Below the pieces are notes generated by a model. That model ran no database searches and had not been told where the DNA came from. It was given only the letters and a program-made list of their open reading frames with translations. Below, one piece after another: positions 41,601-50,600 of a stretch of 64,000 nucleotides of DNA. Each line of letters starts with the position of its first letter. Position 1 is the stretch's first letter. The translations under genes and the position numbers were made by a program. This stretch comes from Oculina patagonica. Lineage: Eukaryota. The DNA lies in contig NC_135769.1 in assembly GCF_052425735.1 (NCBI RefSeq), positions 6,076,001 to 6,140,000 of the forward strand. Reading direction: 5' to 3'.

Positions 41601-44600
41601 GCAGCGTTCACTGAGTCTTTCTTCGTAGTGCAGCAGTGCGTTTTCCCGGTGTTACTTGAATTGGGCATCTTAAATTCTCGACGCTCTCGGTCAACAGAAG
41701 TGGTCTTTTGCTTGTCTTTTAGGAATGTTAACGATTTGTAAAGTAAAGCCACAGGCCACCCAGCTGTACGTAAAGGTTGCTAATCAATTAAAAAATATAT
41801 ATTATACACAAAAGCAAAAACTTCGTGAGCATTTTGAGCACAGTAAAAGTTGCTTCATTAGTCGACTTCATTAAACGGTAATTGAAAATATAGTTATATA
41901 GTAAGCGAATGTATAGGTATATGTGTATTTAGTATATTTATTTTTTTTTGACGTTCTTATTGAAATTATGTTAAACTTTACAGGCAAATTCCATCGTCCA
42001 TGCGACATTATTCAGCTCTAAGAAACTGCGGTATAAAACATACCATCCTACATTGTACGTGCATTTAGTATAGATCCACAATGAAACATCTTTATTGTTT
42101 GGTTTATACCACATGGTCAGCAAGCTGTACAATTCAAGTGGAAAACAGATGTGGCAAATGTCTAAGCCTCTACTTACAGGCGCTACCCTTTACAATTTCC
42201 TTAAACCAACCAGCTACTTCTCCAAAAAGCTAGCCAATTGTATTCAGATGACAATATGACATGTGTCTTACTCCCTACTAAGAGCCACACCCCTTTACAA
42301 TCCCCTTAGCCAACACACCTATACAGTTCAATGACAAAAAATGACAATTTGACAGGTGTCTTACTCTCTACTTAGAGCCACGTCCTTTACAAACTACCCT
42401 TTGGCGAACAAGCTATACAATTCAAGTGATAGCAGATGACTTTTTGCAGGTGTCTTACTCTCTACTAAAAGCCACACCCCTTTACAAACTACCCTTTGGC
42501 GAACAAGCTATACAATTCATGTGATAGCAGGTGTCTTACTCTCAACTAAGAGCCACACCCCTTCTACCCTCTGGCAAACATGATATACAATTGAATGAAA
42601 ACAGAAGACAATTTGACAGGTGTCTTACTCTCTACTTAGAGCCACACCCCTTTACAAACTACCCTTAGCGAACAAGCTATAACAATTCAAGTGAAAGCAG
42701 ATGACAATTTGACAGGTGCCTTACTCTCTACTTAGAGCCACACCCCTTCTACCCTTCAGCGAACAAGCTATAATTTAAGTGATAGTAGATGACAATTTGG
42801 CAGGTGTCCTACTCTCTACTTAAAGCTACGCCCCTTTACAAACTACCCTCTGGCAAACATGATATACAATTGAATGAAAACAGAAGACAATTTGACAGGT
42901 GTCTTACTCTCTACTTAGAGCCACACCCCTTTATAAACTACCCTTTAGCGAACAAGCTACACAATTCAAGTTATAGCAGATGACAATTTGACAGGTGTCG
43001 TACTCTTTACTTAGAGCCACACCCCTTCTACCCTTTAGCGAACAAGCTATAATTTAAGTGATAGAAGATGACAATTTGGCAGGTGTCCTACTCTCTACTT
43101 AAAGCTACGCCCCTTTACAAACTACCCTTAGCAAGCGAACAAGCTATAACAATTCAAATGATAGCAGATGACAATTGGACAGGTGTCTTACTCTCTAATT
43201 AGAGACATGATCTTTTACAAACTACCCTTAGTGGACAAGCTATACAATTCAAGTGATAACAGATGACAATTTGACAGGTGTCATAATCTCTACTCAGAGC
43301 CACCCCCATTTACAATCTCCTCTTAGTCAACAATCTATACACCCTTTCACAATCTCACCCGGCCTAAGCCAACAAACTATACACTTAACAATCTTAGAAA
43401 ACAGACCTCAACATGACTGCTGTCTTATTTGCTACAACAGCTGCACCCCTTTACAATCTCCTCTAAGGAGAAAAGAAATTCCGCTTTGCGGGTTGCGATG
43501 AATCCGTCCGTGGAAACGCCAAAGAACTCGCAAACAGTCTTGAGCATAGCTATACTCAATGCTTTCATTCTCCCCTTCTTGTGCATGTCACACAGGTTTA
43601 AGTTGTCATAAACAATGGGGTGTCGTAACTGCACGTCATCCAGTACAACCTGGCGGGCATCGCAAAACTCTTGCTCTACTTCCACAGCTCTAATATCTTC
43701 GTCGGAAGTTGCCACAGCGTTGCGCAACTTAGCTGCCGTTCTTGAAAAGAACGACCGTATCTGCTGTGCAGTTAGGAATTCGTCTTTGGAGAACAACCTC
43801 GACCCGTCTGCTTTCTTTGCAAATCGCATATCTTTAGAAACTTGCTCAGGGTTTTGTTTGTGACCAGTTTCCTGCCCAAGGTTGAACTTGTCTTCTAAGT
43901 ACTTCCTTTGAGTTTCACTAAATCGTTTGGGCTTTTTGGCTGTTTTCAAGGCCCAACCCTGGGGTAAGCCTGCTCCCTCCGTCGCCTCAACTTCAGTTGT
44001 TTCTAGTGCTTTTGCGGAACTGACATCTTCTTGAAGGAGTATGTGGTATGACTTCTTTGCTTTGTCAAGCAATGTCTCTTTTTCTGGCAACATCTTGCAT
44101 TTGCCAAAGGACATATGCTTCTCCAGACTTGAATACCTCTGATAAACCTTTACACAACCCTCATTTGGGCAGGAAAACAGGACGCTGGAATCTTCCACCG
44201 CACCACTGTCGTTTTCTTGTTCTTCAAACGTTTCATCAAGGCATGGCTTCTTTGAATTTTCTTGGGAAGCGCGGACGAAGCCACCAGGAGAGAACTGGCA
44301 GTCAAATCGGCAACTCTTCAGAATGTCAGGAACTATAAAAAAGGAATGTCATGGTTAAGTATTAAAATAAACTAAATCCCGCATAATTTTATACCCTAAG
44401 CTTAAAGTGTCTATGACACGAAATCTTTTCTTGGCTTTTTTCTTTCGTTGATGTGTTTCGATAAAGGATTCATAGTTAAAATTTGTCCATAAAAAAATTT
44501 GCGTCATTTTTTGCCGCCGAAATGTCGCACTCTCAGCCATCTTGAAAATTCATCAAACAAGTAGACGTCACAAAGCTGACGTGACGAACCTTTTGGCCGC

Positions 44601-47600: not shown

Positions 47601-50600
47601 CGTTTCGTGGTCAGGCTGGTTGTTGGTGTGTCGCTGCCGCTAGAAGTTTCGCTGCTTGCCGACTGTGAGTTTGGTTGATATAGGCTAGTCTCCTCTGTTG
47701 TCAGTTGGTAAACTAAATCGCCAAGTGTAGAATCAGGCTGAGACAGATTTTCTTCTTCTATCGTCAGGTGACGGATTGAGTCATCAAGTTGAGAGTCGGG
47801 CTGGCACGGACTATAGTCTTCTATCTTGAGGTGGTAGATTGAGTCACCAAGTTGTTGCATGACTTCTGAACTAGCTGCATCTGCTCTCTGTGTTTTAAAC
47901 AGAAAAAAATTATGTTCACTTGGGAATAAAAAGGCAATCCATATGGCTATGCCAGCAAGTAAAATAGCTTGAATGATAACCTTTACTGCGTACAACTGAA
48001 GATGAGTTAGTAGAAAATAACTTGGCCGGTGGATTTTAAAAAAAACCATTGAGTTGCGGCAGCAGCAGCGACCATAGTTAAGATCAGCAATGAGTAACCT
48101 CCTCTGTAGCTGATGCATATTACTTACCTTTGCGATATTCTCTGATATGTCCTCTTCAAGTTCTGGGCCACATTGATCTTCGATAGGTGAAATTGCAGAT
48201 TCTTGGGCAGTGCTTTCTATAGGAGATGACTCCTCCAGCTTTCTTCGACATTGTGTGCATATTCCTAAGGAGTTAAAAAATGGCTGGATTTCATGTTCTA
48301 CCTAGCTAGAATGTATAACTAGAAAATCTTTGATTTCTTGTTCTTATTCGTTTTTCTCCGTTTCGTGCTGAGTCAGTGGCCGATCCAGACCTTCAGCTAA
48401 GTGGGGCCCCCGATCATCCAGGCCCTGGAATAAGAGGGGGGTCAGCTCTGGAAAATAATCTTTCTAAACCCTTCGGGGCTTAATTTGGTCTCAATATAGT
48501 TAAAAAGCAACTCTTTATTTTGTGTATTAATCAATGCGTAACGGACGGATTTTGACCAAGACTACCACTTATTTCGGTTTAATATGGAGTAACAAAAAGT
48601 ATCAAACGTGTAAACGTGTTATATGGCTGAAAACTTACGTGAGCCTACAGGAAGCAGTACTTGAGTTAAATGGTGGAGTAGTTTGGCATGAGAAAGAGAT
48701 ATTCCTCTTACTCCTGATACTGACTTCCCATGCGAAGACCATCCACTTGGAGCGGCACAATTTCTTTTATTTGAACGCCATCTGATGCCAAACTTGTCGC
48801 GGTGTCTTGGGCAAATTGTGAGTTTGAGATGATCTTCGCCCACATTGAAAATGCCTTTTTAAAAGAAAACAATCAAGGCACTGTGCTTAACAACATTTGA
48901 CAATATTCTCTTGATAATTGTTTTTACCATTGATGGCACGTCACTGCATTCATATGTTGTATCCTTTCACTACAGTCTAAGTAAGCTATTTCTCTTCTTT
49001 TGTGAGCTAAGCCAAAAGGAAACTGGGTACTAGAAACATAGTCCACTTTCGTCACGCATTTGTCACGCATTCGTCACGCTTCAATTCCACGTTTAAAAGT
49101 CGCTTTGCACCTGCCAGGCGCGGTGACCCAACGGTTAGTAGCTCCGAACCGAGCGCTCCAAGTTCGAGCCCTTACCGGGGTCACTGTTGTGTTCTTGGGC
49201 AGGACACTTTACTCTCACAGTACCTCTCTCTACCTTGGGTACCGGCGAGTTAATAGAGAGGTTAAGCATGACGTTAACGGCAGACGGCAAACGGCAAAGA
49301 TAACTTCTGATTTTGAGTTCTTTTCTTCTAATCCGTAAATAAAGCACACAAAAATGGAATAATGTCTCCTACTATTCATTGCAAATACAAATAATTTCAC
49401 TCCACTGTACACACAACTAAAGAGACACGGCAAAAGTTTCAGTTTTGCCGTTTGCCGTTTGCCGTAAACGTCATGCTTAACCTCTCTAATGATGGGGATA
49501 ACCCTCTGTTGGACTACCATCCTAGGCTACCCATGCCACGGGAACCAAGATAAGCTCCGGGTGTAATTTATGGTCCACTATTTTTGTATGCAGACCTTAC
49601 TTAATCTTACATAAAAGTAAAGATCAGTAAAAGTGTTATGCTTATTGTTGGTAATTATTAATTATTACTGTGCCTTCACCTGCTTCGTATTCACTTTATT
49701 GTTCTAAATTTTAGTCAGATTCACGAGAATCATACATGTCTTGGGTGCTTGAGAATAAAACTAAGCGGGTAATTATTAGTTACTAACATATCCGTACAAC
49801 TACAACATACCTGCTCGTGCTAGTAATAGCTTTGGCTCCGAGTCTATAGAAGCGTCTCGAACGCCGTATGCACGTAGATGTCCTTGAATGTCTTTGGTAC
49901 ATTTAGCAATGACGACACTATTCGTATTTGCCGGATTGTCCACACTAGGACCACATTCTCCCCCTGCAATCTGTCCATATTCACACGCGGCCATAAGCAA
50001 AAGCCGGCACAGTCGTTTCTGTCAAAATGAACTGCACTGGAGTGACAGCAAGTATAATCGGTAGTTGAAAATTTGCTTCGTGGCCGCGCCACTTCCGGGG
50101 TGAATTGGAGTTATCCAGTCTAGCTTTGCACATTCACATCACATCTCAGAACACAGCTGACAGCGTCGAGTATTTGAGATGTCAAAGTAAGATCGGGAAA
50201 ATGCGCTGCTGCACTACCAAGAAAGCCTTAGTAAACTGTACTTCCTGTTGAATTATGCGGTTTTGCCAAGTTAATCGTTAACATGGACGTTACATTGAAA
50301 CATGATCGCGTGCGACAAGAAGACGTGAAGAGGCATTTCGCTCCGTATTTTGGTACGAATAATGTGGTTTCTGGACTAGGAAAAATCATAAAGGTAAGAA
50401 ATATTTCTATATTGCTCAGATTTGGTATTTACTTCGTTGTAGATGCCACATTCTCGTTGAAAGCAGATTCGAAAGTATAATTTGGTAATCAACGTACCGG
50501 AACCGCTCAAAACAGAAGATAAGCTCGCATTTCAAAACTCTCGCGAAAGTTTCGAACAAATTCGCCAACATAGCAAATAAGCAATTCCACCGCAAAAAAC

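Follow-up and report, generated by a model that had tools for sequence, protein, structure and literature searches.

Does a transposase gene that is visible only as scattered open reading frames (ORFs), separated by introns that other repeats have invaded, belong to a transposon lineage that kept moving or to a gene retained by the host? The question is raised by a 64,000-nt stretch of the Oculina patagonica genome, termed the window here, that spans positions 6,076,001-6,140,000 of the forward strand of NC_135769.1 (assembly GCF_052425735.1) and whose own positions are used throughout. An initial reading of the letters, referred to below as the original prediction, had placed a Sola3 transposase at 43425-49994. 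These coordinates delimit the gene, but the element to which it belongs is larger and occupies 40320-51271. With a probability that we put at about 0.9, this interval is a full-length autonomous Sola3 DNA transposon that is young, present in multiple copies and transcribed, and is a known kind of element that has not been captured by the host.

The Transposase Gene

The minus strand carries several long stop-free blocks between 50021 and 43428 from which a six-exon gene was rebuilt using homology and splice signals. The exons total 3600 nt, equivalent to 1199 codons and a TAA stop. All five introns have GT..AG borders, the split codons specify G, R and V, and the exons contain no in-frame stops. 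The intact coding sequence of six exons and 1199 amino acids that the original prediction had assembled by canonical splicing was borne out in these respects. The components of the gene are as follows.

Exon A, 49994-49811, minus strand: 184 nt, with the ATG at 49994 and a Cys-rich N-terminus; one spliced contig makes use of donor 49811
Exon B, 48854-48639, minus strand: 216 nt; junction 48639/48264 is present in RNA contigs and the acceptor is conserved
Exon C1, 48264-48128, minus strand: 137 nt, with an ICTQCRRK motif; junctions 48639/48264 and 48128/47887 are present in contigs
Intron C1/C2, 48127-47888, minus strand: 240 nt, in frame and sometimes retained
Exon C2, 47887-46727, minus strand: 1161 nt, collinear with single-ORF relatives
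Exon D, 46022-45029, minus strand: 994 nt, with a zinc-chelating HC..C.H..C..C motif followed by an RNase H-like core with a triad of Asp residues (DDD)
Exon E, 44332-43425, minus strand: 908 nt including the TAA, specifying a weak C2H2 finger and a C-terminus that is conserved and ends in CSCCSK; junction 45029/44332 is present in contigs

Splicing was assessed with transcript contigs from four public runs (three organisms, four studies) that were placed on window positions 44001-50000. The contigs behave as RNA, given that in most runs depth was low or nil across the sampled unique intron stretches 44801-45000 and 46201-46400. Four of the five junctions (48639/48264, 48128/47887, 46727/46022 and 45029/44332) were found in spliced contigs which skip exactly 48638-48265, 48127-47888, 46726-46023 and 45028-44333, with CT..AC borders on the plus strand that correspond to GT..AG on the gene strand. 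The 240-nt intron was spliced in runs X1 and X5 and an unspliced contig also was present in X1; as the block 48301-46511 is stop-free, retention of this intron would give a product of 1279 amino acids instead of 1199. Two intronless paralogues, of 1035 and 1068 amino acids, are collinear with the protein from mid-exon C2 through to its C-terminus.

The fifth junction, between exons A and B, is supported by protein conservation along the full length of both exons and by conservation of the position and phase of the intron. The exon A peptide is 35-52% identical over residues 1-61, and the exon B peptide 35-63% identical over residues 1-71, in many paralogous lineages. Moreover, the A/B intron recurs at the same position and in phase 1 in three divergent lineages, with the pattern GCA G/GTAAG ... 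YAG/GN that always specifies Gly, although the intron is 102-111 nt long in two of these lineages compared to 956 nt here. Thus, the examination of junctions for which the original prediction had called was answered by RNA at four sites, and at the fifth by the three lineages.

Donor 49811 was joined solely to acceptor 44332, in one contig from run X5 with 30 nt on its short side. This contig hints at a rare direct splice from exon A to exon E that keeps the frame and would specify a protein of ~364 amino acids which lacks the catalytic core. Such a product could be a regulator.

Element Limits and Insertion Site

The alignment of seven other near-identical copies to the window was confined to 51275-40316. 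The terminal sequence GAGGGGTTTGCTC adjoins TTAA at both ends, amid unrelated flanks, in six other copies and at the one recovered (5') end of the copy designated C11. The element was delimited as 40320-51271 because the other copies align only there and because its termini abut TTAA. It is bounded by terminal inverted repeats (TIRs) and by a target-site duplication (TSD) within a host repeat, arranged as listed.

40320-51271, minus strand: whole autonomous Sola3 element, 10,952 bp, with termini 5'-GAGGGGTTTGCTC...GAGCAAACCCCTC-3'; the ends were found in all copies
51272-51275: TTAA TSD on the gene-5' side; a single TTAA is present at the paralogous empty site
40316-40319: TTAA TSD on the gene-3' side; a single TTAA is present at the paralogous empty site
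49985-51271: gene-5' arm of the TIR, ~1.29 kb; the arm takes in the start codon, 10 nt from its inner edge
40320-41607: gene-3' arm of the TIR, ~97% identical to the other arm
42207-43324: tandemly repeated 93-96-bp units, situated after the stop codon and ahead of the 3' TIR; copies differ in how many units they have
38834-40315: left part of the host foldback repeat, a 1.69-kb repeat that received the Sola3 insertion
51276-51471: right part of the host foldback repeat; the foldback is itself flanked by TTAA duplications, at 38830-38833 and 51472-51475

The outer 82 bp of the two TIR arms are identical, the first difference being at position 83, and the 1290-nt comparison of the arms has 36 mismatched positions and six columns with gaps. 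The original prediction was correct that the outer ~80 bp match, but its description of the arms as diverged was overstated. Ten of the differences (positions 125, 150, 155, 206, 215, 232, 279, 280, 294, and 295) also are present in three or four of the other copies. Most arm differences are inherited asymmetries between left and right ends rather than decay of this insertion. No subterminal repeat motifs were found in the TIR.

The host foldback is a single 1.69-kb element with arms of ~800 bp and TTAA duplications, for which at least 450 first-look candidates exist in the genome. In uninterrupted foldback copies the two flanks overlap by one TTAA, which provides a paralogous empty site for the Sola3 insertion. 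Duplication of TTAA is proven because the empty site carries a single tetranucleotide. A candidate element of 12.6 kb, bounded by 1.5-kb TIRs and containing an insert of 1.29 kb, was rejected: the other copies end at 40320 and 51271, and the outer parts constitute one foldback.

An exon at 51989-51807 on the minus strand, which we take to be the C-terminal part of DDB1, has the foldback repeat downstream on the same strand. The Sola3 element therefore is located in a foldback within the last-intron region of this presumed DDB1 gene and is co-oriented with it.

Catalytic Core and Family Assignment

Exon D includes LDW, QDNAGCYH and GKGACD motifs whose Asp residues are D113 (45686-45684), D196 (45437-45435) and D237 (45314-45312), respectively. 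When 26 homologues were aligned, neither D113 nor D237 varied, conservation of D196 was at least 90%, and a cluster of His and Cys residues was located upstream. The three candidate catalytic Asp motifs that had been picked out from the single sequence thus hold across the homologues. An AlphaFold2 model based on this alignment (predicted local distance difference test score of 87) has the order b1-b2-b3-a-b4-a-b5-a, with D113 in b1, D196 immediately after b4 and D237 in the helix that follows. The best matches to the model in the PDB with Foldseek were retroviral integrase cores (E ~1e-4) and terminase nucleases, none of which was close. As modeled, exon D would adopt an RNase H-like fold with the predicted DDD triad in the canonical places.

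The supplement of Majorek et al. (2014) displays RNase H-like cores for its group E.13, which comprises Sola3-1_HM and Caenorhabditis remanei CRE_08425. When aligned by eye to these published rows, exon D was identical to CRE_08425 at 56 of 127 positions (44%, with two short gaps) and to Sola3-1_HM at 33 of 131 positions (25%). Motifs common to exon D and the E.13 rows are DW..K..P, Q.SD.Y.K.GIS.H, DNAGCYH and FS..QGGK, whereas the Sola1 and Sola2 rows were a far poorer match by eye. The core alignment supports membership of the predicted transposase in Sola3, as originally proposed.

No Pfam match above threshold was obtained with the exon blocks or with two full-length paralogues, the zf-C2H2 match on exon E being below threshold, and a sequence search of the PDB yielded no match. 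Models for Sola, Kolobok, Zator, Academ and a small number of other superfamilies are lacking in Pfam (PMC5751038), and the blank Pfam result therefore is expected. A TSD or TIR definition specific for Sola3 was not found in the literature searched. The Sola superfamily was reportedly described by Bao et al. in 2009 with a TSD of 4 bp. The element has TTAA at both ends and 1.29-kb TIRs, and so resembles Sola3 reference elements in its 4-bp TSD, TIRs, DDD triad and absence of a Pfam model. The order of the core motifs is shared with Sola3-1_HM of Hydra and with CRE_08425; set beside these two, the features of the family described here are the 1.29-kb TIRs, the six-exon gene and the repeats borne by its introns. 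Named homologues are from the sea anemones Actinostola and Exaiptasia, and an ESM Atlas look-up of one homologue returned unnamed clusters from Cnidaria, Mollusca, and Echinodermata.

Kolobok and piggyBac are the classical TTAA-targeting superfamilies, and the insertion site raises the possibility that the element is a member of one of these instead of Sola3. The resemblance to piggyBac extends to cut-and-paste movement, TTAA duplication and a DDD triad on an RNase H-like fold. However, the termini differ, the spacing between Asp residues is compact here, and there was no match to PF13843 (DDE_Tnp_1_7) at E ≤ 1 with any exon or with the two full-length paralogues. Kolobok elements follow a rule of a TTAA TSD with 5'-RR and YY-3' termini (PMC9587614), and the arrangement TTAA/GAGGGG...CCCCTC/TTAA observed here conforms to these purine-purine ends. 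Nevertheless, a stretch of only 41 residues, which includes CYH, separates D196 from D237; neither CxxH nor DxxH is present, no insertion domain intervenes between catalytic residues two and three, and no THAP match was found in Pfam. As the core aligns directly to the published Sola3 rows, placement in Kolobok or piggyBac is scarcely credible and the element is treated as Sola3 in what follows.

Copies, Lineages, and Selection

The 529-Mb genome was searched with the catalytic exon, which gave 118 scored matches among 383 candidates, eight of which are 98-100% identical. Searches with the terminal sequences recovered at least 19 elements of 2.8-12.3 kb with paired ends, comprising eight that are full-length and at least 11 that are shorter. 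TTAA flanks were present at different sites in all copies checked: this copy and six others have them on either side, and C11 has one at its 5' end. These distinct flanks argue against segmental duplication as the origin of the near-identical copies. All six exons are open with the same splice sites in six of the eight full-length copies, and frameshifts are present in two.

Divergence between copies is 0.1-1.6%. The main group and a sublineage that comprises copies C7 and C8 are separated by a non-synonymous divergence (dN) of 0.006-0.008 and a synonymous divergence (dS) of 0.027-0.039, which gives dN/dS values of 0.16-0.28; intron divergence of 0.026-0.029 between the same groups is close to dS. 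This copy differs from copy C1 by 13 synonymous changes and one non-synonymous change. The pattern fits a transposase that was under selection while its lineages continued to move.

The original prediction had offered domestication as one of its two explanations: a transposase kept for host use would account for an ORF that has stayed intact despite repeat-filled introns. The intact ORF, a dN/dS ratio below one, and the location in sense orientation inside the intron of a host gene are compatible with this proposal. Comparison of dN and dS among copies had been suggested as a check on it, but purifying selection between sublineages also is typical of an active transposon lineage, and the values obtained fit that situation. 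Moreover, the at least 19 copies with both termini, of which eight are full-length and those checked reside at unrelated TTAA sites, the retention of 1.29-kb TIRs alongside TSDs, the existence of a paralogous empty site and the hundreds of related paralogues all contradict capture by the host. Domestication is thus rejected as very improbable, and a multi-copy transposon remains the favored interpretation of the locus.

The next lineage is at most 60% identical in the amino acid sequence of the core, and the family is a separate Sola3 lineage of its own in this genome. The distant lineage L022, with 40% identity in the core, is represented by an 8.5-kb element with TIRs of 830-849 bp and TTAA flanks; TTAA targeting and long TIRs therefore occur in at least two divergent lineages here. 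Many Sola3 lineages are present in the genome. Those with core identities of ~46% or less mostly have single open frames of ~630-1130 amino acids, and in those with identities of 47-60% the core mostly is in a separate exon of ~340-400 amino acids. Introns thus seem to mark one clade.

Certain copies have individual features. In C11 (G000:C11:9934300-9951300) the exons are open, exon E has a 12-nt in-frame deletion, and the 3' TIR is unrecognisable within the DNA fetched. C12a (G000:C12:11793900-11810900) has 1,284 bp of additional sequence inserted beyond the point that corresponds to window 41925, and its TIR arms differ at only five positions, which may reflect gene conversion. Deletions in the tandem array amount to 95 bp in C12b, 189 bp in C7 and C8, and 379 bp in C11.

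Intronic Cargo Repeats

The introns contain a repeat that resembles a short interspersed element (SINE) and three MITEs (miniature inverted-repeat transposable elements).

49116-49590 (3' limit approximate), plus strand: SINE-like repeat within intron A/B, on the strand opposite to the gene and split by the 236-bp MITE; tRNA-type A and B boxes were identified by eye at its head
49255-49490: 236-bp MITE that lies inside the SINE-like repeat and has a TTAA/CTAA duplication; not present in C7 or C8
46053-46260: 208-bp MITE in intron C2/D, with 25-nt TIRs and 777 first-look candidates; present in all eight copies
44402-44786: 385-bp palindromic MITE in intron D/E; present in all eight copies

Each insert is a member of a repeat family that is dispersed throughout the genome, the SINE-like repeat having 934 first-look candidates and an RNA-contig depth in the thousands. 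The SINE and three MITEs recognized in the original prediction all were recovered, with the proviso that ARAGORN and Rfam found no tRNA match in the SINE-like repeat. The central hairpin of the palindromic MITE (44543-44647) produced sub-threshold Rfam matches to microRNA precursors (mir-1002, 37 bits compared to a gathering threshold of 85), which most likely reflect mere hairpin shape.

The eight full-length copies are collinear through every intron and share the SINE-like repeat and the 385-bp and 208-bp MITEs. In contrast, C7 and C8 lack the 236-bp MITE, which has 100% identity among five copies; the form that lacks this MITE also was observed in RNA contigs with the joint 49250/49487. The pattern of sharing therefore implies an order of events in which the SINE-like repeat and two MITEs were acquired, the sublineages split, the third MITE entered, and at least five further transpositions ensued. 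The distribution among copies supports the cargo model, the other explanation put forward in the original prediction, whereby introns of an active lineage would have absorbed repeats and would carry them as cargo.

Expression and Possible Present-Day Mobility

At seven positions that are private to this copy the transcript contigs carry the letters of other copies, and some contigs carry those of C7 and C8. Because the contigs match other copies and both sublineages, the family is transcribed from several copies and not solely by read-through from DDB1.

From these data a working scheme can be proposed. The transposase would comprise a Cys/His-rich N-terminus (exons A to C1), a conserved middle region (C2), a zinc motif and DDD core (D), and a C-terminal weak C2H2 finger (E). 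The protein would bind the 1.29-kb TIRs, excise the element and paste it into TTAA, thereby duplicating the tetranucleotide. The SINE-like repeat and the three MITEs would have entered the introns of an ancestral active copy and, because splicing removes them from the mRNA, would be harmless and be carried to every new site. Catalytic activity, TIR binding by the transposase and present-day mobility are properties that we infer. Specifically, the idea that the family is mobile today, with a TTAA-specific transposase that moves elements of 10-12 kb and introns that act as safe harbours in which the SINE-like repeat and MITEs are spread, is advanced tentatively and at rather less than even odds.

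Alternatively, the family may have become extinct recently, so that young, intact-looking copies no longer move and the transcripts are residual or arise by read-through. Contigs with retained introns are common and two of the eight full-length copies already have frameshifts, as might be anticipated for such a family, and current mobility is deduced rather than observed. On the other hand, copies that differ by as little as 0.1-1.6%, the ratio of 13 synonymous to one non-synonymous change between this copy and C1, the identity of the 236-bp MITE cargo in five copies, and spliced transcripts from both sublineages are more in keeping with recent movement. Extinction is considered unlikely.

Certain points weigh against the interpretation of the locus as a young, transcribed and autonomous Sola3 transposon. 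The link to Sola3 was drawn from a by-eye alignment to two published rows. Searches, translations and substitution counts all were performed exon by exon. The four runs are only presumed to be RNA, and were consulted as contigs, not as reads. The A/B junction was not found in the RNA contigs of these runs; contigs pass unspliced through both donor 49811 and acceptor 48854, and the start of the mRNA therefore is not fixed. Finally, because the contigs and this copy disagree in several of their letters, the copy in the window may itself be silent.

Sola3 is among the least studied of the cut-and-paste superfamilies. To our knowledge, no Sola element has been shown to be active and no Sola3 structure has been solved. 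The family is a reasonable candidate for a first test of Sola3 activity because it has several intact, spliced and transcribed copies, defined ends, a proven TTAA target and a confident fold model that names three Asp residues. The family also is a clean example of repeats that survive in the introns of a transposon and then are copied around the genome along with it. For annotation, split genes such as this one are missed by transposon finders that are based on ORFs. Knowledge of how such elements work is unchanged by the finding.

Other Features of the Window

Satellite arrays with units of 34 bp and 36 bp are located at 10035-11815 and 23924-24787, and a run of N is present at 8935-9287. 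Pairs of direct repeats that are 79-87% identical and ~10.3-11.2 kb apart connect 7734-9810 with 18074-21030, which suggests an old local duplication.

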